DNA of 64,000 nucleotides from Penicillus capitatus (lineage: Eukaryota; Plantae; Chlorophyta). Below are positions 1,418 through 56,885 of this stretch, piece by piece (position 1 is the stretch's first letter; each line of letters opens with the position of its first letter). Where the stretch lies: NCBI GenBank assembly GCA_965649825.1, contig OZ287696.1, forward strand, positions 229,101 through 293,100, read 5' to 3'. The translations under genes and the position numbers were made by a program. Below the pieces are notes generated by a model. It saw nothing but the letters and a program-made list of their open reading frames with translations, did not search any database and was not told the origin of the DNA.

Positions 1418-3247
1418 CTAAAGGGTGGCGTGGCCATTGACACGACCCAATTCCAACCCTTCGCTTTCATCATGTGTTCGGGCTCTGCCTTTGGCCGTTG
1501 TAAACGATCGCATCGTCTTTAACAGTCTCCTGGTGAGTCCAGGCTGCCCATTCATGATTCCTGGCACAGAGCAGAGATCGTATCCGATCAGAAATGTCGA
1601 TGGACTGCATCAAATCGGAGACTTACGTGTTCGGGCATCAACGCATTCGGATGGACCCCATCCCCAGGCAAACATCCATAGGTAGTTAACGGTTGACAGA
1701 ATGACGAGCCCAGCAGCAGAGAACCGAATTTCCCAACGTCCATCGGGCGATTCAGAGTCCGCTTGTGCATTCCAGTTCTCCAGAAATCGAGTGGTGTTGA
1801 TAATGTACGTAAAGGATGGAAGGCAAGCTAGAGCGATAAACATGGAACGGACGCTTTCTCCCGGTTGACCAAAAACGGAAAGGATTCCAAACACCACGAT
1901 CATGATTTCGAGACAGATCTCCACCCACAGTCCATCGTACCTATCCCTTCCTTCAATTCCCATATTCAGTAGAGAAGTGGATATTACCAACTGCATGTGG
2001 GATCATGCCTCTTGCAGACTTCGTCTTGAACGGAGCTCAGTCCGATACCAAAGATGACGACGCCTAGGAGACCCGTAAAGCTGAGCATGGCTCTGAAGGA
2101 TCTCGTCCTCTCCGGTGCAGGAGACTTCCATGAGAAATGCAAACAGCCTACAACGTGAAAGAGTGAGATGTCTGTGCATAATAGGGACGCGGGACTGACC
2201 CATTGAGATCACTAGAAAGGCACCGGCAGCGACGATGAGAGAGCTCCCGATGACTGTTCCCACAGAGTCATACGTTTCGTAGGCGCTCTCCTGGTTTTTC
2301 AGATAGAAGAAATCGGTACGTGCTGTGTTGGCCACACGAAGGAAGACGGAGACGGGAATGGATACTAAGACGCAGTAGGCTGCCAGGACTTCAAACGTTC
2401 TTGACAGTCCCATGGCCAGAATGTACATCAGAAAGAAGAGCATGGACTGGCCCAGTGCCCACCACTGAGGTTTTAGCTCGGGACATGTCTCCTTGTCCAT
2501 GCATTCTTTGAGCCAGGCTGAGAAATTCAAAATCCATCCCGTCACGCCCAATCCAAGACCCGCAATACCCATTCCAAGTGCAAGCAGATCACGAGAGGCG
2601 CAGCACGTCATTGGCGCATTGGATGATGCACTGTAGCCATCGGACATCGATGAGACATCCGATTGTGAATCCCAATCGATCTTGTCGTCGACAGGATCAT
2701 CTTCAGGAACAATCTCTGTCGATGCAGAAACACCCGTGTGTGCATCGAGCTTGTCTTTTGTCAATCTGCCAGCAGAGAGATCACGAGAGATGCATCGTGA
2801 GGGTGTCTTCTCTACTTGTTCGTGGGAATGGGCATTCGGCTGGATCTGAATCGCAATCCGATTGAGAAGATGAATCCGAGATTGCATCCAGCGAGGAGCA
2901 TCAGGACATAGGAGACGGTAGGGTCGACAGAGTTGGAGAGGACACCTTGTGTGGCTACTGTTGAGCCAATGATTCCCAGCAACGACAGACGTCCTTCGCT
3001 GAAGCGATTCAGCCACAGTTCCACAATGACATAGTAGCAGAGGCCAATCGTTTCCAGACTGAAAAGCCACCAACAGATGTCTGAGTGAGCCACAGTGCGC
3101 TGCGTCTGGCAAAGCACAGCTTGTCTGTCTCTTGAGATTGATGTGACAGCAGGGACAAACCAGAAGGACAGCTAGACAGATGTTCAGAAAAAAGGCGATG
3201 AAGAAGAAACAGAGTCTCAGCCAGTAGAGATAGGACGCTTTCAGCAT
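1418..3247 (-). CDS. Polytopic membrane protein with three tandem ~4-TM repeats, LCI1-like
   Basis: Five exons joined in frame by GT-AG introns (four of ~47-55 nt, the last somewhat longer); each repeat has TM1, then (W)W-x4-5-E/Q TM2, TM3, and AG-x4-7-N/A-x-L-x-F-x2-G TM4; stop TAG at 1418. Confidence 0.7.
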
Positions 3248-10953: not shown

Positions 10954-13258
10954 TCAAGGCCAATCTCCCGAATAGTAACTGTTTGGCATCCCCAGCCAGA
11001 ATTTCAATCTCTCCAGTCCCAGATTCGTCTGGTCACCACGACACTCCTGTTCGAGACGACGCAGCATCTCACGATACTTGCTCAGATCGATCCTCTTGTC
11101 GAGCAGCTCCGTCGCTCTCAGGATCTTTAAAGCATGTGACAAGTCGCGCTTCATAATGCAGCTCCTGAGAAGTGTATCCAGCATGGCGCTGTCTGGATGT
11201 CCGCCCATGTTACAGAACCATCGGAATTTTGTAATGGCGGCGGACAGATCTCCTCGTTTGGTATAGCCTTGGATGATGGCACCGAAGGCTTCGACGGGAA
11301 TCGATTGTTTTCTTTTCTGAGCGCACTGCACAGCGCCTCGCAACATCTCTTCTGCCTCTTCCATCAGACCCGCTTTGGCCTGAATGGATACCATGGCATT
11401 CCAGCACACGACATCTACTTCGATCGATGGCGTATTCTGCATCGTCTCGAAAATCCGGCGGCATTTTCTGATGTTACCGGATCGCTGTGCTGCTTTGAGC
11501 AGACAGGTATAGGAGACGGTATCTGGTGAGAAGCCTAACTGAATCATGGCATCAAAAAGCGACTGCACAGATGCGTCGCTGTTTTCTGTACGCATCATCT
11601 TTGTCAGGAGGGTGTTCATCGTGTCCACTCTGGGTCTGATGTGACGTTTCTTCATCTCTTCCAAAAGCTGAATGATGTGATCTTTGGATCCTTCGCCTTC
11701 AGCAGCGTAGCCTTTTAGCAGTGTGTTGTACAGAATGCTGTTTGGTCGTAGTCCTGAACGGATCAGGGTATCAAACTGTTCACGGGCCATATCCAGTCTC
11801 CCTTCCTCCACATAAGCATCCATCAACACACCGAATGTTACCTACAGACAAGATCGTGAGGATTTTGCCCCTCACGAAGTAGGTCACTTCGTTTGGCTTT
11901 CCTCCCTGCGACTGGAAATCTCCAAGAAGACGGAGCGCTTCGTCGATCTGTTTTCGCTTTGTATATCCCTTCATCAGTGCCGTGTATGACCAAACATCTG
12001 GTCGGCATCCTTGACTGAGTGGTGGGTGCAAACGCTTCGAATCGAGATGGACGTCTTTGTATGACCATACCTGATGGTGTCCTTGAGCATTTTTTCGCCG
12101 TCCTCCACACGATCGCAGAGGACAAATCCCTGGATGAGCGTATTGTATGTGATTCTGACTGGAAGAATGCCAGACTGTTTCATTTCTTCGTAACACTTTA
12201 TCGCTCGTTTCATGTCTCTCAGTTTGCAATAGCCCTATTGTCCAGATCCATAAACAGTCGTCAACGGTGTCGAACACGGACGGACTTTGATCAGTACATT
12301 GTAGAAGCGCCCGTCTGGCCGAAATCCTTTCTTTCTCATAATCGGCATGAGCTTTTCGGCTTCTTCCATTTTGCCAAGGGCCACACATGTACCACATCCT
12401 GAAGCGGCATCATCGATCGACACTGGGCAGTTGCTGCAGGATGTCGACCTGCTTGGAAGAGTGCGGCATCGAGAGGGCAGTTTGTATTCTTGGCTTCATT
12501 CCAGATTTCATAGGCGGTCAAATGACTTCGACTTCCTCTTCGTTTGTCGTGCAAGAGTCCATTCAAGATCACACTGTAGGTCACTGCATTCAAAGAATAT
12601 CCACTCTCTTTGATATCTCTGTACAATTTAATGCCAAAGCTGTAGGCATCCGCCTGACCCAAACCATTCCTCCAGTCCTGTCTCGATCGTCAAAGTGGAT
12701 CTACCTTAAATGCAAACTGAATAAGGAAATGAAAAGTGCGATAATTCAATGCATAGCGCTGATCCCCCAGTCTGCCATACAGCTGCATCGCTCTTCCAAA
12801 GAATTGCTGAGAACAGAGACCTGTCACATCATTGACCCATGCATGCTCCATGTTCAGCACGCGTGTATCCAGTATCCACCTTGGAATAACGGATTCAGTA
12901 TAGCAGTGTCGATCACAGTCTCTGTATCCATCAGGACTTGAGCTGTCTGGAAAGCTCTCGGCCAGTTCTCCTGTCGAATGTCTTCCGAGAGCGAGTGCAT
13001 GAAACCGACCGTCCTGCCTGTCTGATGTACAGGAATCTGGTTTTGATTGTCTGCAAATGGCGAGGCAGATTCGACAATGCTGCCCACAAACGGAGAGCAC
13101 TCTTCTTTCTCTCTCCCTCTTGTCCATCTCGCTTTGGGACGTGAGGGTCGACGTGGAACAGAGCTTGAGGATGATGCCGATGCTGTTGTCACACTCTTGC
13201 GTCCATTCTCATGATCTCCAGGTGCCGTTCCTGGACGCAGAGATACACACAGAAACAT
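10954..13258 (-). CDS. P-type pentatricopeptide repeat protein, HCF152/PPR1-like, probably plastid-targeted
   Basis: Many PPR motifs (PNSILYNTLLKGYA, PDTVSYTCLLKA, PDVWSYTALMKGY, PVRITYNTLIQGF); C-terminal LERLKFWLGMPNSYYSGDWP resembles the HCF152 tail; Ser/Arg-rich N-terminus; start uncertain. Confidence 0.9.
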
Positions 13259-23191: not shown

Positions 23192-25411
23192 ATGCGTGTG
23201 CACCGCGTGGCGGCTGTACTTGTGGTAGGCAGCACTAACCCTGAGTCTCGCGCATCTTGTGCGGTTTGCGTTTTAGGTCGTCTCTCTTGTCTGCGCCGCC
23301 GCCTACCCAGTCTACGGTACATGTTGTCTGTTTGCAGTTCTCGTTGACAACGAAGGTCGTTTACTGGTTCAGACCCGAAAGATTATGACGGGAAGAAATG
23401 GGTATCGTCAAAGGGAGATCAAGTGAAGCACGAGTACAAGTACATCGGTGTGCGTCCCTGGGCACGTCCAGGGACAACGTACGGATCACCAAAACCTGAA
23501 GAGGTGAAACCGGCGAGAAAGAAGAAGTCAGGGAAGAGAGCGCACACGGGGGAGCATTATGCGAAAAGTGAGGAGGAACCTGAAGTGGAGATTGAAGTTC
23601 CTGAGGTGAAGACAAAGACACCCAAACATGGACATGAAACAGGGATACCAGCATCCCCCATGGCGGAACATGGTTCGAAGGTTCCTGTCTCACCGGCGTA
23701 CGAAGTTGAGCCATCTATTGAACCGATCCCACCGGTGTTGCCTGAACCGACCGAACCTCCATCTGTGGAGCCCGCGGCTGCCATGTCAGAGGAGGAACCC
23801 GAAATCTACACATATGAGATGGAACTTGAATATCCGGAAGAGATTCCGTGTGCTGTTGCCGTTGAATCTATGGTGATGCCGGAAATCTTGGAAGAAGAGG
23901 CTCCGGGTTCAATTGTTGGAATGCTCGAATATGAACTCGAAGAGGAGTATGACGTTAAGATTAAGCCTGGGCATGTCATCTTGCCGGAGGAGCCTGTAGA
24001 GGTACCTGCAGTCGCCGAGCCATCGGCACCTGCACCATTCGTCGAGCCATCGGCACCTGCACCATTCGTCGAGCCATCGGCACCTGCATCGGCGCCAGTG
24101 GTCGAGCCATCGGCACCCGCACCGGCGCCAGTGGTCGAGCCGTCTCCTTTGGTGGTCCCTGTGAAATCGCCACGCTCCAGGAAACACAGTCCCAAGCCAT
24201 CGCCACTGCACTATCATCATCCACCGAAAGTGAGTACTGTCCCGTCTCCAGTTCCTCCCAAGGCGGAGGTGAAAAAAGAGAAGACACATCGCAAAAAGAA
24301 AAAGATTACGGTCTCCCCAGCACCAAAGCCGGTGGAGGAACCCAAAGAAGTGGAAGTGGCACCTCCGATGAAGAAAAAGGCAAAGAAGCCAGAACCATGC
24401 TGCTGCGAATGTGCCAAGAAACAGCCTCCTGGATGCTATTGTTATCCAGTATTGCCAAAGAGACATTTCCCATCTTACTACAGACCCGTGTACAGTCCCT
24501 ATAGCAGGCCTGGTGCTGTCTACGAAAAGCCGCCTGTTGAACCGCAACCTCATAAACCATCGAAACCTTCCAGGGCCAAGAAGAAGATCGAGCCTGAGCC
24601 TTTGATGTCAGTGGCGCCACCGAAACACAAGAAGAAGAGTCCGGTGCCATCGCCTTTGACGTCAGTGGAGCCACCGAAACACAAGAAGAGTCCGGTGCCA
24701 TCGCCTTTGACGTCAGTGGAGCCACCGAAACACAAGAAGAGTCCGGTGCCATCGCCTTTGACGTCAGTGGAGCCACCGAAACACAAGAAGAGTCCGGTGC
24801 CATCTCCTTTGACGTCAGTGGAGCCACCGAAACACAAGAAGAGTCCAGTGCCATCGCCTTTGTCGGTGACACACGAACCAGTACTACCGCACGGCAAGAG
24901 AAAGGAGACGAGGAAATATGAGGTTGAAAAGAAGAAGACAAGACATCATGCTCAAGTGGAAGTACCTGAACCGAAGCAGATCGAGATTCCATCTCCGGCA
25001 CGCATCGAGATTCCGTCCTATCACTTCCCACAAGAGAGATATAAAGCTGGCTATCCTCATCATTACTATGGACCAGCAACTCGAGCGAAGCTGCATTGCG
25101 GTCCAGACGAGTACTGCAAGCATGGGGCGAAGAAAGAGGCAAAGAAGAAGGCGTATTATCCTTATGGCGCGGAGAAAAAGCACAAGCCAGAACCTTCGCC
25201 TCTTGTCACGCACTCGACCGAGGAAACATCCGTTGTTGAGAAACACCATGTGCTCTCTGAGAAAACAGAGACGCATACAACGGAAGAAACAAAAACGTCT
25301 AAAAAATGTAGAAGATGCAAGAAGAAATGCAAGGGATGCGAACCATGTGTAGAAGATGAGAACGGGTGTGCGGTGAAGCTGTCTACTGATGCGGTCTTGG
25401 ATCAACTCTGA
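23192..25411 (+). CDS. Secreted Pro/Lys/Glu-rich extensin/HRGP-like structural protein
   Basis: Signal peptide MRVHRVAAVLV|VVSLVCAAAYPVY over two short exons, then a ~2-kb exon with EPSAPAP repeats, KHKKSPVPSPLTSVEPP repeats and Cys clusters (CCCEC, CYCY, CRRCKKKCKGCEPC). Confidence 0.85.
24014..24145 (+). repeat. Coding tandem repeat, 27-33 nt unit (VEPSAPAPF / VEPSAPASAPV), 4-5 copies
   Basis: gtcgagccatcggcacctgcaccattc repeated directly. Confidence 0.9.
24617..24865 (+). repeat. Coding minisatellite, 51-nt unit (PPKHKKSPVPSPLTSVE), ~5 copies
   Basis: ccaccgaaacacaagaagagtccggtgccatcgcctttgacgtcagtggag near-identical copies. Confidence 0.95.
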
Positions 25412-32395: not shown

Positions 32396-32548
32396 GATGA
32401 AGGAAAAATTCTTGATCTAGCGAATGCCACTTCAGATGGGCCACGTTGTTTAACGTCGTTTCAAAACCTTTTGTCATCCGGAAGAATAGATTGAGCCAGC
32501 GCCAAAGCGTTTTCGTGCAAGGAACGCGTGAACAGGCCAAAACAGTAC

Positions 32549-35500
32549 ATGTCCAAGCGCGAATCCGGCGCCGTCACTGTCGATTACTTGGGAAAGAAGC
32601 AAAAGATGTCGAATGGAACCGCCGTCCCGACGGAACTCGACGAGGCGCTGCACTCGCGTCAAATCGCCGTCTACGGACGCGAATCTATGCGAAAACTCGC
32701 CTCTGCCTCCGTCCTGATCATCGGCGCCGGAGCTCTCGGCATCGAAGTTGCCAAGAACGTCGTACTGGCCGGCGTCAAGTCGCTGACCCTCATGGACAGC
32801 AGTGTTGTCGCACTCAAAGACCTATCAGCGCAGTTTTATTTGACCGAGGAAGACGTAGGCAAAAACAAAGCCATCGCATGTCTGGAACGTCTTCAGGAGC
32901 TCAACGTCGCCGTCAATTGCACTGTGAGCGATGCTCCGGTATCAGCGGAGAACATCTCACAGTGGAATGTCGTGGTCATGACGAATGGCACATTGGAAGA
33001 GGCTTTGCGCATCGATGCTCTCTGCCACCATCACTCGCCGCCCATTTCTTTCATCACCTCCGAAATCCGTGGTCTCTTTGCTTCAGTGTTTACGGATTTT
33101 GGCCCTGCCTTTGAAGTCGGCGATGTGGACGGCGTTGATCCCTTTACGGGCATTGTCGCACACATTCAGAGAGGCAATCCTACCTTGGTCTCGTGTGTGG
33201 ACGACGAGAGATTGGAATTCGAAGATGGTATGTTCGTGCAGTTCTCTGAGGTAGAGGGTATGGGAGAGTTGAACACGGCTGGACCCATCTCGATCGGAAA
33301 GTGTGAAATGCATGCGTTTCAGTTGGATCTAGATACCAGTGACTTCGGAGAGTACACGACAGGCGGCATCGTCACCCAGGTGAAGCAGTCAAAGACCTTG
33401 CATTTTAAGCCATTGGAAATGGCACTCAAAGAACCAGGCGAGTTCTTGCCAAGCGATTTTTCGAAACTGGATCGACCGCCTATGCTCCATATCGCCTTTC
33501 AGGCTCTCGATGCCTTTCGTGTCCAGCACGGTCGTTTCCCATCCCCTGGCGCCTCATCTGATGCAGATCTGCTGTTTCAGCTGGCAGAGGACATTAACCA
33601 AAAGACAGCAGAGAAGGTGGAGTTGGATCGCGAACTCTTCCGTCATTTCGCTTCCGGCGCTGCAGCAGAGTTGAATCCTATGGCAGCTATGTTTGGTGGA
33701 ATGGTTGGGCAGGAAGTGGTGAAAGCCGCATCGGGAAAATTCCATCCTCTCTATCAATTCTTCCACTTCGACTGTCTGGAATGCCTTCCGGAGACGCCGC
33801 TGACACAGGAAGAGGTGCAGCCGACTGGCAGCCGATACGATGATCAGATCTCCGTTATCGGCATCACTCTCCAGAAACAGCTCGCTGATCTGAATCTCTT
33901 CTTGGTTGGTGCCGGTGCATTGGGGTGCGAGTTTTTGAAGAACTTTGCTATGATGGGCATCTCCTGCGGGGAGAAAGGAAGTGTGACCGTCACAGATGAT
34001 GACATTATCGAAAAGAGTAATCTCAGTCGTCAGTTTCTCTTCAGAGATTGGAACATCCGTTCTTCCAAGTCGACTGTCGCAGCCGAGGCGACTCGAAAGC
34101 TGAATCCGGCCATCAAACTCCGCGCCTTGCAGGATCGCGTGGCTCCTAATACGGAACATATTTTTCATGACGCTTTCTGGAAGGGGCTGGATTTGGTTGT
34201 CAACGCCCTGGACAACTTGAATGCACGTCTCTATGTCGATTCCAAGTGCGTTTACTTTGGAAAGCCTCTTTTGGAATCTGGCACCCTGGGGGCCAAGTGC
34301 AACACTCAAGATGTCGTTCCTTTTGTCACGGAAAACTATGGAGCATCACAAGATCCTCCGGAAAAAGAGGCACCGATGTGCACGTTGCATTCATTTCCTC
34401 ACAATATCGATCATTGTTTGGCGTGGGCCCGTTCTGAATTCGAAGGCATCTTTGAGAAATCCCCCTCGGATGCCAACAGTTTTTTGAAAGAGCCCGAAAC
34501 GTACAAGAAGAAACTGGAAAAGCAAACGGATGCTTCGGCACGTGACAAGTTGGAACATGTGCTGCAGGCATTGACGACAGATCTCTGCAAAGATTTCGAA
34601 GAGTGTATTCACGCAGCGCGCTTGAAATTCGAGGCCAATTTCCACGACAGAATTGCCCAGTTGGTTTTCACTTTTCCAAAAGACAATGTCACAACCAACG
34701 GGTCACGATTCTGGTCTCCTCCTAAGAGATTTCCCACGGCACTGACATTCAATGCCGAGGATCCAGCCCATTGCCGTTTCGTCCAAGCCATTGCAATCCT
34801 CACAGCCGAAGTCTACAGCGTTCCTGTGCCTTCATGGGCCAGTGATGCAGCTAAAGTTGCTTAGCGCGTGATATAGACCGTCGAAGGTGTGACACTTTTT
34901 ACTGTAGGTCGGTGCCTTCGCCGGAAATGTGATTGTCCCTGACTTCGTACCGAAGTCTGGTGTCTACATCGAAACAGATCCGTCTGCAGAGAAGGAACCA
35001 ATGCAGCGCTCGACGGACGATTCCATCGAAGTCGAGAATCTATGGAAGCAGTTGATGCAGTTGAAGCAAGAATTGCCTCCCAATTTTGAACTGCGTCCAA
35101 TTACGTTCGAAAAAGACGACGATGAAAACTATCACATGGATGCCATCGCTGGACTGGCAAACATGAGAGCACGCAATTACAGGTACAGACGCGATCATCG
35201 CATTCATTTCTGCCTCTGAGAAAACAATGTTCTGGAAACAGCATTGGAGAAGTGGACAAGTTGAAAGCCAAGTTAACTGCCGGCCGAATCATCCCAGCCA
35301 TTGCAACAACGACAGCTATGGCTACCGGCTTGGCATGTTTAGAATTGCTCAAGATTATTCAGAAGAAGAAAATTGAGGCCTACAGGAATACCTTTGCCAA
35401 TTTGGCACTTCCACTCTTTGCCATGGCCGAACCGATTCCAGCCAAAGAGATCACATTCAACGATCTAAAATGGTCCCTCTGGGATCGATGGGAACTGGAA

Positions 35501-39812: not shown

Positions 39813-42088
39813 ATGCCGTGTCGGGAATGTTTATTTTTCGCTCTCTTCCTTGTTCTCTCGGCGAAATGTCTTGGTCGTCGTCATCTTTCCCAGTTTACGG
39901 ACCCGAAGACATCTTTTTTGCCGGATGGTTGGAAACGTCTAACAGAAGAAGATTATCTCAAGGGTGCCCTGAAAGAAAACGAGATGCCTTTTGGATTCTC
40001 CGTCGTTCGACAGAACACCACGTTTCCGGACATTCTACTCTCGCTTGACGTCGTAAATCCCGCTGCGAACGCTGACATCTTCTGTGCGCCCTTTAATGCA
40101 TCTGGACCGAGATTGCAGAGTCGTTGGAATAGCCAAAATGCTCAAGGCATTGATTATGTGTTCATCAGCACGAATTCCCCTTACTATGCTCATGCCATTA
40201 CGGACACCGTCAATGGCGTTGCGGAATTCGAATGCATTCTGAAGCACGTGTCCTACGAAGATCCAATCTACTTCATTGACATGGATGTCTCCTACACAAA
40301 GCGTCAAATGCGCGATGAAGAACTGGAAGCGATGGAAGAAATCTATGATATGTGTTGCCAGACAGAAGGTTCTTGCGTTGGATGGAACGAGCAAATGCAT
40401 TCCGTTGAACACGAGACCAAAACTGCACGTCGAAAAGTGGTCGATTTCGATTTCTGTCATATTGCGTCAAATGTCTGCGATGAAGACGGGTACATGCTGA
40501 AGCTGACGATGGACAGATTTGGACTCGAATGTCAGTTCCCGACAGAGCAGATAGCCAAGTTCGAGAGGCTGCGCAAGCTCTCTATGACTGGCAACGCACT
40601 CGGCGGCAACATCTTGGACATTGCACGGTCCTTTAAGGTACAGCAGCTGGTCTCGATGCCAAGTGTATCCCAGCAGTCGTGTGTGGTTATGTGCAGAATA
40701 TGAAGCACTTGGACGAAGTCTCCCTGGCATACAATCGCCTCTCGGGCGCTATGGGAAAAGAGATCGAGGACAGCACACAGAATCCATTGTGCACGATTGT
40801 GCTTCGCGGTTTGGAACACCTTCATCTGGAGAATAACGATATCAACGGTCCTCTGCCTGAATGTCTGTTCTCTGAGGGCAGTCGTCTCCGCGATCTGGTT
40901 TTAGACGACAATCCGATATCGGGATCCATTCCAGACTCTATCGCCAAAGACAGCCCTCTGGAAACCTTCAGTGTCCGAGATGGAAATCTCACAGGCGTCT
41001 TCCCAGAGACATTCGTCCACGCAGACCACCTCGTCTTGCTGCAGCTATCGAACAATCAGATGAAAGGAGAACTGCCGGATGCGTTCGGTCCAGCGCCAAA
41101 ACTGAAGAATCTGTTGATGAGTGGAAACGCATTCACAGGAAAGATCCCTGCTGGTATTGCTGCCTCGGAGACCCTCGAATCCGTCTTCCTGGATCACAAC
41201 GCATTTACCAGTATGCCAGATCAGTGGCTCGACGAGGGACCGAAGACACCGTTGGTGAACTTGGATATCAGTTTCAATAAGATTGATGAGGACTTTCCTG
41301 CGGCACTCGCTCTGGTGCACAATCTCTCGCGACTATACTTGAATGATAACAAATTTCGTGGTCCGTTGACAGACCTACCTGGCATGTTTCCCAACGCTTG
41401 GGTGCTAAATCTATCCAATAATGCCTTCAGTGGGAATATTCCGGCGCAATGGACCAAAATTGGGATGTTCCAGGGGACAGCGAAGGAGCTAGAGTACCGC
41501 ACTCCAGTCCTGGATCTGTCATACAACAACCTGGTGGGCAAAGTGCCAGAGTTCTTTTTTAATATCGACAATTTTCCGAAGAAACTTCTCGAATCTGCCA
41601 CTGTCAACTTTGAGGGCAACAGTTTTATTTGTCCACAAAAGGGGATCACTGCCCACCTGAATGGCTTTGAGCATTGCACTGAAAGCAGAAAGCCTGTTTT
41701 TGGGGAATCGCATTTTGATGTGTCTCGTAACGGAGGCCAGACCGTTCCCTTCGGAGCAGATACTGTCGATAAGAATCGAGAAACGACTGCGACGGAAGAT
41801 GAGGACGCGTTGCAGCTTTCTAGCTCCGAAGACGATTCTTCCTCCAGCAGCAATAACGATACCTGGATCATTGTTATCTGTCTTACGGCAGCTGCTATCT
41901 TTGCCTCTGTGCTTATTGCCTTGGCTCTGCGTTTCAAGCTGTATGGTTTGGCGAAGAAAGCGATGGGAGCCCCTCCGAGTGATGTGGAAATTGCAGCCGT
42001 TAGACATGAACCTTTGGAATCGTCCAAGGAACTCGAAGAGGCGCGGCTGAGAGCTGGCACCCAGAATTCTGATAGCAATCCTCTTTAA
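39813..42088 (+). CDS. LRR receptor-like protein (signal peptide, N-terminal domain, plant-type LRRs, one TM, short tail, no kinase)
   Basis: Repeated LxxLxLxxNxLxGxIP motifs; TM WIIVICLTAAAIFASVLIALAL; one intron near 40637. Confidence 0.85.
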
Positions 42089-47110: not shown

Positions 47111-48100
47111 ACGGCAGAGAAAGGAGAATAGGACGATAGGAATAAAGAAAGTCGGCTGGTTCTTATGTTCTTAGGGACTAACAGCAGTCGTTGGTGGAAT
47201 GAATCTTAGAGCACTACAGAATGGAAGGCGAAGATTGCGGGCGCGTATTGCGCTAATTCGGACGGAGAAACAAGTAATAAATAATGACGTTTTGCCCGAC
47301 GGAAACCGCGGCTCGTGGCCAAAGGTCGAAGTACGAACGTAATGCGTGCTCTCGAGAACGACAAATGAACGTTTACGTCTCCGTGTCGTCGTGCTTGACG
47401 CGTTAACCGCTCTTTTTAATGGTGTGCATTTGACAGGTGAATTTTTGTGGTCTGTAAGTGATCTCTTGCGTCTGGGTGTCCTGTCGTTTTCTGCTCAGTA
47501 GATGCGTGGGTTGTCGAAACAAGGCATGAAATGCAACAGCTAAGGATTTTGCAAGGATATTGCAGCAGTCACATCGCTGAAAGGTCTTAACCGAAGCCGA
47601 AGGAACGCTTCACGTAGATGCATGGATCAAAGTGGTGAAGGTTTTCTGATCCGTCTGAGCCACCTAATCCCTACGGCATGGACGCTCATCAAACAGCCGC
47701 CATGTTAAATGGCACTTGCGCCCACCATTAATCGCTTTTGCAAACGACCTTTTTGTTTCGCGTTCGCGGAGGAGCTTTCGCGAATTTCTTGAAACGTACA
47801 TGCAACATCGAGTCTCGGTGTGCAGACACTACTGACTCCCCAGAAGAGAACTTGAAAAAGGTGCGGGTATACCAACCGCCGTTTCCATTCGCCTTTTTCC
47901 AAACACCTTTTTTTCTTGCTGCGCGATCCTACGCGCTTCCCAAACCGTGCTGTCGCCGGATGCGTCACCTCCGAGGCGCGTGGCGTATTTTTTCGGCCGC
48001 CAGTGATCTTGTTAGATGACACGAAGATCTACCTACCGGCGTTCAGTAGCCGCGGCTTCGAGACTCAAAAAATGCTCGTAGGTTTGTTTGCGGCAGCAAC

Positions 48101-50387
48101 ATGCGGTGGCGTGTTGTTTCGCGCGCACTACTTGTGGCGCTTATCATCGTGAGTTTCGTTGCATGGATATGAAGTCAAATGACGGCGGTGTTCGTAGGCG
48201 ACGACGTCGATCTCTTCAACTGCCGCCACGCGTCAGCTGACGTATGTCGACGGAGGTAAGGAGCAGTCCGCCGACTGTAACCAACGTGAAACGTCGGGCT
48301 GTGCGCAGAGTATACGCAATACACTGTCCCAAAGAAATTTGCTCGATATGGTCCACTCTTTACGTACGAACACGCGCACGGCTTCAAGCGCTCGTCGGAT
48401 TGCAGCTGCGTTGGAGAGGCTGACTGCGACTGCGCGAAGAGTTCGCCGAAAGATGTAGGGACGGATCTCCCCAACTGCAAAGACTGTGACTGCAACCAAG
48501 AAGATCCTTGTGTGCCGCCGGCGAAGAAAAAATACAAGAAGCTTCCACACCCCTGTGTGTGCCGCTGCGAAGAAGGAGGCGGTGGAGGTGGTGGTGCTGG
48601 AGAAAAAACGACCGCTGGTGGAGGTGGAGGTGGTGCGAGTATCTGCTTTGGTGGAGGAGGTGGCGGTGGTGGTGGTGAAGTCGGTGCCTACGGTGAAGGA
48701 GGCGGTGACGCGACAGGTGGTGGTGGAGAAGGCGGATCTCTTGAAGAATCCGTGGGATCTGGTGGTGCTGGAGGAGGTGGAGGAGCAGAAGGTCATGCAT
48801 TGCATCATCCTCCCTATCATGTGTAATGGGGTCATTTCCAGGTGGAGGAGGCGGTGGAGGAGGCGGACCTACTGGTGGAGGTGAAGGAGGAGGCGGTTAC
48901 TACGCTGGGGGCGGCGGTACTGGTGGACAAGCTGCCGATGCCGAAGGAAAAGGTGTGATGTGAACAGATTGAAGGAGATCTGTGATCTTGAATGTGATTC
49001 GCATCTAGGCGGTGGCGGTGGAGGCGGCGGTGGCGGTTTGAGCCATTCCAAGAAAACCCGTGATGGCGGTGGAGGTGGAGGAGGCGGTGGAGCTGAAAAG
49101 GGTTTCGGAAGTGCCGGAGGTGATCGCTTTGGAGGAGGAGGACAAGGAGGAGGCAGTGACTCGGTGGGAGGCGGTGGTGCTGGTGGTGGAGGAGGAACCG
49201 GCGGTGGAGGAGGAGGTGGTGGTTCTGGACACAAAGCTGGAGGATCCGGAGGCGGTGGCGTTTCTGGTGAAAGAACTGGAGGTGGAGGAGGTTCTGGTGG
49301 TGCCTTGAAGAGACACAGAGGTGGCGGCGGTGGAGGAGGTGGCGGAGGTCACCTGAAGAAACATGGAAAGACTGGTGGCGGTGGAGGAGGAGCCGGTGGC
49401 CAAGAAGGTGGAGGTGGCACAGCCGGTGGTGATGTTTCCGGTGGTGGTGGATCTGGCGGTGGCGGAGGAGGAGCTGGAGGCGGAGGAGGTTCGTCTGGTG
49501 GTGGTGGAGGCGGTGGTGGCCATGGAGGTGGCGGCGAAGGTATGTGATGATCTTCAGCAAATGATCTAGATTTCCAAGTGTGGCGCTGTAGGTGGTGGAG
49601 GTGCCGGAAAAGCTGGAGGCGGTGGCGGATCGGGCAAGGCCATTCATGGCGGCGCCGGAGGCGGTGGAGGAGGTGGTCGAGATGAAGATTGTGATGACGG
49701 TGTTCCACCTGGTGGTGGCGGTGGAGGAGGCGGTGGCGGTCTCAAAGGTGTCGGAGAAGGTGCTGGCAGCCGCATCGGAGGCGGAGGATCCGGTTCCAGT
49801 GGCGGAGGCGGCGGTGGTGGAGGAGGATCTGCAGGAGGAGGCGGTGGTGGTGCTGGACATGGAGGAACAGGCGATGGTGGTGGAGGATATGGTTCAGCTG
49901 CCGGAGCTGGAGGCGGTGGTGGTGGAGGAGGCGGATCCTCTTTCGGAGAAGGCGGTGGTGGCCGTTCAGGCGGAGGTGGATACGGAACGTCAAAGAAGCA
50001 CAAAGGAGGTGCAGGAGGTGGCGGTGCTGGAGCCATCGGTGGAGGAGGAGGAGGCGGTGGTGGTAAACACGGTGTCGGAAGCGGTGGAGGCGATATCGCA
50101 GGAGGTGGCGGTGGTGGTGCCATGGGTGCTGGAGGCGGCGGCGGCGGTACAGGCCGAGGAAGAGGCAAAGGCAAATGGTCTTCCGGAGGTAATGCCCTAT
50201 TCACTCTCGATTCGTCTTACCATGCATTTCGGATGTTTGTTCAGGTCTCTGGTCGGGAGGAGGTACCTGGGGTCACTCTCATTCAACGAAGAAAACGAAA
50301 CTCAAAAAGACAAGCGCGTACAAAAAACAACATGCGGCCATGGTGCACAAGCGCCAGGCTCGTCGGGCTAAGCTCGCTCGTCAATGA
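48101..50387 (+). CDS. Secreted glycine-rich structural protein with Cys-rich N-terminal domain and basic C-terminal tail
   Basis: Signal peptide MRWRVVSRALLVALII|ATTSISSTA; domain CSCVGEADCDC..CKDCDC..CVCRC; poly-Gly exons separated by + strand GT-AG introns; tail KKTKLKK..KRQARRAKLARQ*. Confidence 0.85.
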
Positions 50388-50981
50388 GATCTTTTTCCTG
50401 GTGGGCAACGCGGTCCACTGGGTTGCCTTCAGTTTTGTTATGTTTGAACTCGAAACGTGGTGTGATGGGCTTTCGATCTTGGGAGGCTTGAGCAAGCTTT
50501 GAAGCAATCTCTCGTTGGCCCCACTGATTTTTCTTTAACAGAATCTCGACGAGCCTGCTTCAGTGAGAGTTGGTCTACCTACCCCATTTGAGATGTTACG
50601 TCGTTTTCAGTGCCTTTGTTGCTGTCTTTTTGAAACGGTCGCGAAATTTATGCCTTCGAAAGTCTCTTTTGGCGACCGCCACTTCTGTTTTCCAGCAAAG
50701 CACTTTGGACACATGTACGTCAATGTGCCAATCGACGATACCTAAGTTGTGCAACATCTCGTGTCTGCACATTTAAAAGAGGCTCTTTGCGTAAAAACGC
50801 ATCTCCCACAACAAACTTAACCACAAAAAATCAAGACAACCATTCACAGAGCAAAGACGTCAGGGAGAATGTCCTTCCTCGGTTGTGAACAACCTGCCAA
50901 CACGATTCTACGATGCAGCCCGGGATGGATCTCCCGCGTGGCGCCGTTAGCAGATATCTCTCGCCGTTCGTATCCCAGTCG

Positions 50982-53598: not shown

Positions 53599-56500
53599 AT
53601 GAGTTTCAGACGACGCGCCGTTTCGTCGCTCTTGAGATCGATATCCTCCTCGTTTGTCACACCGTCAACCACAACCGCCCCCATTACACGTTCATGTCCC
53701 GTGCCCCTCGGTGTGACAAGGACGTTCAACATAACCTCGTTTTCGAAGTTCTCGTCTTTAGGGGGCGGCTCTGGGCGCGATGTATTCTCGACCATTTTCA
53801 ATTCCCCTGCCAGTCGCGCGATCTCTGTCGCTTCGCTAAGACCCAGTGACAAGTAATGATCATCAAGACAAAGGGCGCTCTGCAACGGAGATCGCTGCTT
53901 TCAGATTTCAACCGCGTCACAACAGCATCACGCCGACAGAGGAGAAAGAGATGTTGAATGCCTGCGGCTTTCAGTCTTTGGAGGCGATGATGGAGGCAAC
54001 GGTGCCAGCTGCTATTCGACGGCGGCCGATGCAACTGGGAAAGTACCACGAGGGCTACACGGAACACGAATTTCTCAAAAAATTCAAAGAAATGGCATCG
54101 AAGAACAAAGTCTTGAAATCCTACATCGGTATGGGCTACTACAACACATATCTCCCACCCGTCATCCAGCGAAACCTCTTGGAGAATCCTGGCTGGTACA
54201 CACAGTATACGCCCTATCAGGCAGAGATCGCTCAAGGACGGTGAGTGGATCGAAAGCACGACGCCGTTTTGTATGAGATGGCGGCGCTGTAGATTGGAGT
54301 CGTTGATGAATTTCCAGTCAATGGTGTGCGATCTGACAGGCATGGATTTTTCCAACTCCTCCCTTCTGGACGAAGGCACGGCGGCGGCTGAAGGAATGAC
54401 GATGTGCAATGCGTTGCTGCGGGGAAAGAAAAAGAAATTCTTCATTTCTGAGAAATGCCACCCGCAGACGATTGCCCTCTGCCAAACACGAGCCGAGGGA
54501 CTCGGCATCGAAGTGGTCGTCGGAAACGAGGCCGAACTGCCAAACGACATCTGCGGCGTCCTAATCCAATATCCAGCCACAGATGGGCAGATTCAGGACT
54601 ACGCAGAATTCACAAAGAAAGTCCACAGTCAAGACGCACGTGTTGTTGTCGCGTCAGATCTGTTGGCCTTGACATTGCTGACGCCTCCTGGAGAGTGGGG
54701 TGCCGATATCGTGGTGGGCAGTGCTCAGAGATTTGGAGTGCCGATGGGTTACGGAGGACCGCATGCAGGGTTCTTTGCGTGCAGCGATCAGCACAAACGC
54801 CTCGTTCCGGGTCGCGTAATCGGTGTGAGCAAAGATGCACATGGAGACGCAGCATTTCGTATGGCACTTCAGACGCGCGAACAGCACATTCGACGCGACA
54901 AGGCAACGTCCAACATCTGTACAGCGCAGGCGCTTCTGGCAAACATCGCTGCGATGTATGGTGTCTATCATGGACCAGAGGGATTGAAGACCATTGCTAG
55001 CAGAGTGCATGGACTGGCATGCACGCTGGCAGCAGGTGCTCGGAAACTAGGATTGACCGTCAGTCCCAATCCTTTCTTTGACACTGTCTGCGTCCACGTC
55101 CACGATGCTCAGAAAGTGCGTTGCCTCGTTGTTAGATGGCCGGCCGAATTGTGAAGATTGTGGGCGTAGATGTGTGAACTGGCAGTGCAGCATGGTATGA
55201 ATCTGCGCAAACTGAGTGACAACGCTGTGACGATTTCGCTGGACGAAACGACAGAGATCAGCGACGTGGATGCACTGCTAAAGGTCTTGAACCATGGAAC
55301 GGCACCCGGATTCACTGCCGCCACCTTGGCCGAGTCCACAGAGAGTCCGCTGAAGGGATCTCTACAGCGAAGCAGTCCATTCATGACGCAGTCGGTCTTC
55401 AACTCCTATCACTGTGAACACGAAATGCTGCGTTATCTGAAGCGGCTGGAGAACAGAGATCTATCCCTCTGCCATTCCATGATTCCTCTGGGGTCGTGTA
55501 CGATGAAGCTCAATGCCTCGTCTGAGATGATGCCTGTGACATGGAACGAGTTGGCCAACATGCATCCCTTTGCTCCGGTGGATCAGACGGAGGGTTATCA
55601 GGAGATGTTCAGAGATCTGTGCGATCAGCTCTGTGAGATTACGGCATTCGACTCCGTTTCCCTTCAGCCAAATGCCGGCGCTTCTGGAGAGTATGCTGGA
55701 CTCATGGCCATACGTGCTTATCACCTCTCTCGTGGAGACAGCAGCCGAAACATCTGCATCATTCCGACATCGGCACACGGAACCAACCCAGCCAGCGCCG
55801 TGATGGCTGGAATGAAGGTGGTGACCATCAGCACCGACGACATGGGCAACGTCAATATCCAAGAGCTAAAAGACAAGGCCGAAAAGCACAAGGAGAATCT
55901 AGCTGCCTTTATGATCACGTATCCCTCGACGCATGGTGTCTACGAGGAAGGGATCGATGAGATGTGCCGGATTATACATGAGAATGGTGGACAGGTCTAT
56001 ATGGATGGAGCCAACATGAATGCTCAAGTGGGACTGACAGCTCCTGGTGTGATCGGCGCAGATGTCTGCCACTTGAACCTGCACAAAACCTTCTGCATTC
56101 CTCACGGAGGTGGCGGACCCGGAATGGGACCCATTGGTGTCAAGGCCCATCTGGCGCCTTTCTTGCCATCGCATCCTGTGATTCCGACAGGTGGGCTGCC
56201 CGAGCCAGAAGCGCAGAACTCTTTTGGTGTCGTATCGGCCGCTCCCTTTGGATCGTCGCTGATTTTGCCGATCTCCTTTGCCTACATCGCAATGATGGGC
56301 GCTGGTGGACTGACCCATGCCTCACAACTGGCCATTCTGAATGCGAACTACATGGCCCAGAAGCTGCGCACACACTACCCTGTTCTTTTCAAAGGAAGGA
56401 ATGGCACCAATGCTCACGAGTTCATTATCGACATACGGCCATTCAAAGAGACGGCCAACATCGAACCCGAAGACATCGCCAAGAGACTCATCGATTACGG

Positions 56501-56885
56501 TTACCATGCCCCGACGATGTCCTGGCCCGTTGGTGGAACTTTGATGATCGAGCCGACAGAAAGCGAAAGCAAAGCCGAGTTGGATCGCTTTGTGACTGCC
56601 ATGATCTCCATTCGCAACGAGATCCAAGAGATCGTGGATGGCAAACTGCCTAAAGATGATAATCCATTGAAGAACGCACCCCATTCTATGGGATTCCTGA
56701 TGAAGGAGACATGGGATAAGGCTTACTCACGGGAGAGAGCCGCTTTTCCGGCTCCCTGGACGCGCATCGCCAAGTTCTGGCCAGCGACTGGACGTGTCGA
56801 CAATGTCTATGGCGATCGACATCTCATTGCCCGACTGCCTCCTGCTACAAAGGACAATTCTTTGCCCGAGGCTGCGACGGCTTGA
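53599..56885 (+). CDS. GLDP: Glycine decarboxylase P protein, mitochondrial
   Basis: Presequence [14 protein letters not shown]...[11 protein letters not shown]|FQPRHNS; [20 protein letters not shown]; [22 protein letters not shown]; PLP site [19 protein letters not shown]. Confidence 0.98.

Follow-up and report, generated by a model that had tools for sequence, protein, structure and literature searches.

A single-chain, 12-helix membrane protein of bryopsidalean algae with three tandem units possibly related to LCI1

The DNA analysed here is a 64,000-nucleotide stretch of the Penicillus capitatus genome (GenBank assembly GCA_965649825.1, contig OZ287696.1, forward-strand positions 229,101 to 293,100), referred to below as the window, with positions counted from its first letter. 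On its minus strand lies one nuclear gene of a bryopsidalean-type alga, which encodes one chain with three times four transmembrane (TM) helices and belongs to a family restricted to Bryopsidales-type algae. By sequence comparison, TM2 to TM4 of the units have a statistically supported, in-register similarity to the family of LCI1 (low-CO2-inducible protein 1), a CO2-uptake protein in the plasma membrane of Chlamydomonas. On balance, we favour reading the product, 519 amino acids (aa) long, as three tandem and highly diverged relatives of the LCI1 protomer that could form a covalently linked, asymmetric pseudo-trimer.

Between 3247 and 1418, the minus strand holds several hydrophobic open reading frame (ORF) pieces in different frames. 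An earlier note on this DNA had quoted peptides from these ORFs, all of which lie where it had placed them, and had proposed that GT-AG introns join the pieces into one protein. Splicing of six exons through five GT-AG introns of 47-66 nt indeed yields a single frame, from an ATG at 3247 to a stop codon at 1420-1418. The model was built manually and then by a purpose-written spliced protein-to-DNA aligner guided by two Caulerpa proteins, which returned the same exons. The sole difference concerned the acceptor of intron 1, where the aligner preferred 3105 over the tandem site at 3099, giving a product of 519 rather than 517 aa. The two AG acceptors are 6 nt apart (..cag acg cag, minus strand 3099-3105); the one at 3105, favoured by Caulerpa homology, adds Thr-Gln. 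As both preserve the frame, alternative splicing that differs by two codons is possible at this intron. A single chain of about 12 TM helices, as the note had claimed, is what the manual model, the aligner and the collinear orthologues of Caulerpa and Bryopsis agree upon. The junctions it had estimated near 2760-2810 and 2150-2200 correspond to introns 2 and 3, and three more introns exist (Table 1).

The closest proteins among 5.8 billion clusters are two Caulerpa lentillifera predictions (g6811.t1 and g1410.t1; 530 and 526 aa), which are 52-55% identical to the window protein over 97-98% of its length and collinear with it through all exon junctions. A profile of these three sequences retrieved only 11 proteins from 1.84 billion representatives. 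One is BSKO_03321 (GMH35453.1) of Bryopsis sp. KO-2023, a full-length protein of 541 aa that is about 28% identical and aligns end to end, covering all junctions; the rest are ORF fragments on unannotated contigs. The Caulerpa and Bryopsis proteins are true orthologues, annotated as 'hypothetical', with no link to LCI1 and no repeat structure recorded. We retrieved the unannotated contigs (L001-L008) and modelled the genes there with the same spliced aligner. All modelled loci are ordered unit 1, linker, unit 2, unit 3 and tail. Full-length collinear orthologues occur only in siphonous green algae, with two in Caulerpa, one in Bryopsis and several on the unannotated contigs; two metagenome scans for additional family members found none.

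Intron positions vary among the species. L005 has unit 1 together with some of the linker in a single exon, and the remaining linker, unit 2 and TM1 of unit 3 in another; L003 has one open frame for unit 2 and TM1 of unit 3. Because exon borders do not follow unit borders, three separate genes, the outcome that the note had named as one that would refute it, are excluded, and the full-length orthologues contradict them as well. The reading frame and the junction residues are conserved in at least seven taxa. Compared with L001, a 95%-identical relative, the window gene has exon identities of 87-94% and few gap columns there, among them a 3-nt gap in exon 3 that keeps the frame. Intron identities are 73-86%, and the intron indels have lengths not divisible by three. 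A pseudogene reading was rejected. The neighbourhood is also kept: in L001, L003 and L004, the upstream neighbour is an ATP-synthase alpha/beta-type gene and the downstream one a CwfJ_C_1 gene. The ORF at 668-1408 on the minus strand of the window occupies the downstream (CwfJ) position and has no Pfam match on its own. L001 and L002 (ENA ERZ26696514; 1.39 Mb and 0.44 Mb) carry a near-identical locus with the same neighbours and about 95% protein identity to the window gene, a pattern that points to haplotypes, to subgenomes or to recent duplication within an organism closely related to the source.

The 12 predicted helices fall into three groups of four, both by hydropathy and by DSSP assignment on two AlphaFold models. 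Exon 3 carries the motifs of unit 2, namely a CxxxxxC loop, QWW at 226-228, ANTAR and glycines G299, G307 and G315. Exon 5, which encodes TM2-TM4 of unit 3, is the most LCI1-like stretch of the gene. In the basic tail, the motifs LLK...S and G.E[LM]G are conserved across the family. Conserved cysteine pairs occur in loop 1 of unit 2 (C-x5-C; aa 212-226, minus strand 2509-2465) and of unit 3 (C-x6-C; aa 352-371, minus strand 2037-1933), in each case a few residues ahead of the tryptophan that opens TM2; unit 1 and LCI1 are without the pair. These cysteines may form extracellular disulfides.

According to one review, the crystal structure of LCI1 is trimeric and the trimer was confirmed by native mass spectrometry; another review describes the protein as a plasma-membrane CO2 channel of the Chlamydomonas carbon-concentrating mechanism. 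We obtained its sequence with an X-padded query whose termini were translated from cloning primers in the supplement of PMC5102585. The query matched chain A of PDB entry 6BHP ('Membrane protein', 200 aa, three chains in the entry), and residues 3-193 were recovered. In this chain, TM2 opens with YQWWIIQFELF and TM4 contains AQAGLIMVGVANGLTIFFLG; the LCI1 motifs given in the earlier note are thus correct, as is the homotrimer. Searching with LCI1 gave 38 relatives of 105-242 aa, all single-unit and mostly from Chlamydomonadales, the top one named 'low-CO2-inducible membrane protein [Chlamydomonas reinhardtii]'. Residues W81, G153, N161 and G169 are conserved in 29/29 members, and W82 and E87 in 26/29. 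The Ulva genome has no LCI1 orthologue, according to a 2026 preprint.

A direct, hypothesis-driven comparison with empirical nulls did find similarity to the LCI1 family, at the level of the bryopsidalean family. We built a hidden Markov model (HMM) from 29 LCI1 homologues and ran hmmsearch, with all filters off, against ten family proteins. P values (Z=1) were 6e-8 for L003, 1.6e-7 for Caulerpa 2, 6e-6 for L004, 3e-5 for L007, 7e-4 for Caulerpa 1, 1.6e-3 for the window protein, 3e-3 for L001 and about 0.02 for L005, Bryopsis and L006. Separate domain matches fell on units 1, 2 and 3, each at HMM positions of about 81-180, which correspond to TM2-TM4. As a null, columns of the family alignment were shuffled within each TM or loop segment (n=1000), a procedure that leaves composition and conservation, relatedness and the pattern of hydropathy intact. 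The observed summed score of 68.2 bits was reached by 0/1000 shuffles (-28.5 +/- 17.6 bits, maximum 30.9), the best single score was 18.2 bits against a null maximum of 10.4, and reversed sequences summed to -13.5 bits. A second null comprised real ORFs: six-frame translation of the window and six loci gave 1447 of 40 aa or more. The top four were all family exons: unit 3 of L004 (E=0.0015), unit 3 of L003 (0.006), unit 3 of L007 (0.098) and unit 2 of L003 (0.22). From 177,635 PDB sequences, the LCI1 profile drew 6BHP alone at E <= 10; at this database size and with the same settings, L003 has E=0.011, Caulerpa 2 0.03 and L004 1.1. With LCI1 homologues as tblastn queries against the whole window, the best match lay in unit 2 (2479-2222, E=0.019), and the top ten included TM4 of unit 3.

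Shuffled unit by unit (n=400), the comparison with the LCI1 HMM gave P=0.005 for unit 1, P=0.0175 for unit 2 and 0/400 for unit 3, and the reciprocal comparison gave 0.015, 0.078 and 0/400. A profile of LCI1 plus unit 2 raised the z-score of unit 3 from 5.0 to 7.4, and one of LCI1 plus unit 1 raised that of unit 2 from 2.4 to 3.7 (P=0.0075). The claim of LCI1-type units thus stands in that the HMM matches all three, with a likeness that is clear in unit 3, moderate in unit 2 and weak in unit 1; it must be limited in that the similarity is at twilight level, confined to TM2-TM4 and strong for unit 3 alone.

The residues behind these matches can be traced by position. LCI1 has W81 and W82 opening TM2, E87 within it and a G153-x7-N161-x7-G169 pattern in TM4. 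Unit 3 has the complete TM4 pattern at identical spacing (G445-x7-N453-x7-G461), together with W373 and E379; the second tryptophan is absent. Unit 1 has W41-W42, N104-x7-G112 and, five residues from the tryptophan as in LCI1, E47. In unit 2, Q226-W227-W228 and G299-x7-G307-x7-G315 occur, with serine at the glutamate position and glycine at that of the asparagine. LCI1 and the units further share a basic residue before TM3. Units 1 and 3 therefore retain both intramembrane polar residues and unit 2 neither, so that the three positions are not equivalent and asymmetry is built into the chain. Other LCI1 invariants (A111, L112, N127, T164, I165 and Y171) are mostly lost in the units. In a gapless TM-by-TM profile matrix, TM2 and TM4 of LCI1 select TM2 and TM4 of every unit, and TM1 and TM3 do not; 6/12 comparisons fall on the diagonal (about P = 0.05), and TM1 of LCI1 has no specific partner.

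Several results weigh against a relationship with LCI1. Similarity to LCI1 did not reach conventional database-search significance. Pfam gave nothing above noise for the window protein and all family members; the PDB sequences, searched with the window protein (phmmer) or a 10-sequence family profile, gave no match at E <= 10 and hence no 6BHP; and the family profile retrieved orthologues only, and no LCI1, from 1.84 billion and 5.8 billion proteins. Comparisons of the HHpred and Foldseek type, by which the earlier note had proposed to check its idea, did not support it. HHalign of the 29-sequence LCI1 profile with the unit profiles gave probabilities of at most 2.6%. Its best local alignments kept the register, pairing unit 1 with TM2-TM3, unit 2 with the end of TM3 and unit 3 with TM4, but shuffle controls gave P = 0.03-0.14 (local) and 0.025-0.075 (global), and reversed unit 3 outscored real unit 3; for these reasons we do not rely on HHalign. 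AlphaFold reached a predicted local distance difference test score (pLDDT) of 37 with 3 sequences, and of 55.3, with a predicted TM-score (pTM) of 0.51, with 14 sequences. For the latter model, Foldseek against the PDB found nothing beyond generic helical bundles, with a best E of 0.08 and TM-scores of at most 0.19; 6BHP was absent from the top 50.

The HMM test itself supplies further counter-evidence. Scores are low throughout, at most 18 bits, and the most divergent members (Bryopsis and L005) give no signal individually. The window protein alone scores 3.8 bits, and its unit 3 exon ranks second of 1027 window ORFs, with E=0.8; the case consequently rests on the family and not on the window sequence alone. 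The best LCI1-HMM score among the window ORFs belongs to 50567-50773 on the plus strand (5.8 bits, HMM positions 20-56, the TM1 region), a match that we judge to be noise (E=0.4 among 1027 ORFs). TM1 and the long loop 1 of LCI1 (GAALLQ..AN.L ... YIIPYP..P.YQFQYQ) found no counterpart, with no domain match to HMM positions 1-80 in any unit. Within-segment shuffling abolishes helix periodicity, so that this null may be somewhat lenient, and the reversed, real-ORF and PDB controls offset the leniency only partly. Finally, the units do not resemble one another significantly in direct sequence comparison: units 2 and 3 are marginal (P = 0.03-0.06), and HHalign of unit against unit, with 3 or 8-9 sequences per profile, gave no significance. 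The units are closer to the well-sampled LCI1 profile than to one another. What holds of the 'three divergent repeats' in the earlier note is therefore the repeated topology and the LCI1-type motifs, not a direct similarity between the units.

Alternatively, the protein could be an orphan 12-TM transporter or channel of Bryopsidales, unrelated to LCI1, in which the WW/E and G-N-G motifs arose by convergence or chance. The failure of Pfam, of the PDB sequences and of HMMER over 1.8 billion proteins to find LCI1, the negative HHalign and Foldseek results, and a window protein score that is not distinguishable from the best random window ORFs all speak for this explanation. It must, however, account for a score that none of the 1000 topology- and composition-preserving shuffles reaches, nor the reversed sequences, for three family members that outscore every PDB protein except LCI1, and for matches that keep to the register throughout and that several species show on three units; both families are, moreover, green-algal. 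We consider an orphan origin unlikely, if still to be taken seriously. Claudin- or tetraspanin-type four-TM families were rejected as candidates, with no profile match and a different order of Cys and Trp motifs.

A domain fusion, in which only unit 3, and perhaps unit 2, came from an LCI1-like gene and unit 1 is an unrelated four-helix module, is likewise improbable in our estimate. Unit 3 does carry most of the signal, with no shuffle reaching its score in either direction and its exons heading the ORF background, and unit 1 is without the Cys-pair loop common to units 2 and 3. A profile of LCI1 plus unit 3 misses unit 1, a point that also counts against three related units, and HMMER comparisons of unit 1 with units 2 and 3 are not significant. 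Yet the LCI1 HMM matches unit 1 in register, over TM2-TM3, in Caulerpa 1, Caulerpa 2 and L003, with the shuffle and reciprocal P values given above. Unit 1 also retains the WW pair, the glutamate at +5 and the N-x7-G of TM4, its addition to the LCI1 profile improves detection of unit 2, and global HHalign of unit 1 against unit 2 gives P=0.008. Three separate small head-to-tail genes, or a decayed locus with the single chain as an artefact, have next to no likelihood: a prokaryote-style ORF list fragments the locus, as public gene callers do on related contigs, but exon borders differ from unit borders, TM1 of unit 3 is in frame with unit 2 in L003 and L005, annotated full-length proteins exist in Caulerpa and Bryopsis, and frame and junction residues are conserved while introns evolve faster than exons.

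With an even number of helices in each unit, all three should lie in the membrane in the same orientation. Basic segments follow unit 1 (RFRSSR...K.K.K) and unit 2 (K...R.R..R) and recur in the tail; they would mark cytoplasmic ends, and by the positive-inside rule the Cys-pair loops would face outside. Three parallel LCI1-like units in one chain are the form that a covalently linked LCI1 homotrimer would be expected to take, and their shared predicted orientation is compatible with a pseudo-threefold packing, which we infer for the chain. By analogy with LCI1, the protein may form a channel that passes CO2 or a comparable small solute, with a putative role in inorganic carbon uptake. Its origin would lie in tandem duplication, followed by fusion, from an LCI1-like ancestor, and the three units would share common descent by triplication. 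In Edaphochlamys debaryana, two LCI1 paralogues, HYH03_011274 and HYH03_011272, share one 679-kb contig, and their locus tags differ by two. Single-unit LCI1 genes do therefore undergo tandem duplication, which offers raw material for fusion.

Set beside LCI1 (Cre03.g162800 of Chlamydomonas reinhardtii, 6BHP), the present protein shares the four-TM unit and the setting, a green-algal membrane protein. The LCI1 entity comprises three chains, whereas here three units lie in each chain, and LCI1 and its 38 relatives are single-unit proteins, in contrast to a three-unit fusion. Loop 1 of LCI1 (..VFQST.YIIPYP..P.YQFQYQ) and its TM1 are unrecognisable here, and units 2 and 3 have a short loop with the conserved Cys pair in its place. 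The known LCI1 relatives belong mainly to Chlamydomonadales and the present family to Bryopsidales. Our literature search found no paper that mentions a Bryopsidales relative of LCI1 or a multi-unit LCI1.

Subunits of homo-oligomers have become tandem repeats in one chain in two-pore channels and in the four-repeat Nav and Cav channels, which allows asymmetry. The concept of duplication and fusion is the same here; those channels, however, are fused dimers or tetramers of six-TM voltage-gated-type units, with no sequence relation to the present family. We know of no fused trimer of four-TM units among such tandem-repeat channels. Were the relationship with LCI1 to hold, the family would extend across green-algal classes, and the tryptophan and glutamate of TM2 and the Gly-Asn-Gly spacing of TM4, having survived extreme divergence, would be candidates for functional residues. 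The protein would be a natural concatemer, in which mutations could be placed in one of the three positions at a time, something that a homotrimer does not permit, and marine siphonous algae, a group with none known, would gain an LCI1-type component. For the 'hypothetical' genes of Caulerpa and Bryopsis, the comparison provides a first functional lead. LCI1 is one of very few proposed dedicated CO2 channels and a target in efforts to move algal carbon-concentrating mechanisms into crops. We speculate, tentatively and with more doubt than confidence, that Bryopsidales hold an unrecognised deep branch of LCI1 in the form of a fused, obligatorily asymmetric single-chain pseudo-trimer for CO2 entry, with Glu/Asn in units 1 and 3 and not in unit 2.

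Table 1. Features of the LCI1-like gene and of the rest of the window (residues in 519-aa numbering).
Feature	Position	Strand	Basis or remark
Whole gene, ATG 3247 to stop 1420-1418, 519-aa product	1418..3247	-	Manual model, spliced aligner, full-length collinear orthologues
Exon 1: Met1-Leu29, TM1 of unit 1	3161..3247	-	Both models; start aligned with Caulerpa N-termini
Intron 1	3160-3106 (or -3100)	-	GT-AG
Exon 2: TM2-TM4 of unit 1 (WW41-42, E47, N104, G112); alternative tandem acceptor 3099	2816..3105	-	Both models
Intron 2	2815-2766	-	GT-AG
Exon 3: acidic Ser-rich linker (aa 114-182) and whole unit 2 (TM5-TM8)	2200..2765	-	Both models
Intron 3	2199-2148	-	GT-AG
Exon 4: conserved connector (HFSWKSPAPERTRSF), TM1 of unit 3, Cys-pair loop	1988..2147	-	Both models
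Intron 4	1987-1941	-	GT-AG
Exon 5: TM2-TM4 of unit 3 (W373, E379, QPGES, G445, N453, G461)	1627..1940	-	LCI1 HMM tests
Intron 5	1626-1561	-	GT-AG
Exon 6: basic C-terminal tail and stop codon	1418..1560	-	Both models
Unit 1, aa 1-113, genomic span including intron 1	2854..3247	-	LCI1 HMM P=0.005, reciprocal 0.015
Acidic Ser-rich linker, about 70 aa between units 1 and 2	aa 114-182	-	519-aa numbering
Unit 2, aa 183-318, genomic span including intron 3	2137..2596	-	LCI1 HMM P=0.0175; LCI1 plus unit 1 HMM P=0.0075
Conserved connector between units 2 and 3	aa 319-331	-	519-aa numbering
Unit 3, aa 332-465, genomic span including intron 4	1649..2097	-	0/400 shuffles in either direction
Basic tail after unit 3	aa 466-519	-	519-aa numbering
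PPR protein	10954-11829		
Ubiquitin-activating enzyme E1	32528-34864		
LRR protein	40679-42088		
Glycine decarboxylase P-protein (GDC-P, GcvP2_C)	55170-56885	+	Photorespiration enzyme, about 52 kb from the LCI1-like gene

Elsewhere, the window contains ordinary eukaryotic nuclear genes (Table 1). Near-perfect tandem repeats of 27, 33 and 51 nt, in up to five copies with 87-98% matches, occupy 24012-24862 on the plus strand; they lie within a 662-aa ORF (23423-25411) that has no Pfam match and looks like a repeat-containing coding region. GC content reaches 0.595 at 48001-50000, and this segment also shows the strongest GC skew of the window (+0.395). Imperfect GGN-rich repeats of 30 and 39 nt occur at 49195-49291 and 49810-49891, where ORFs on opposite strands overlap (48832-49860, minus; 49592-50371, plus), with no Pfam match. 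Between 30001 and 32000 the GC content is 0.417, compared with about 0.50 elsewhere in the window.

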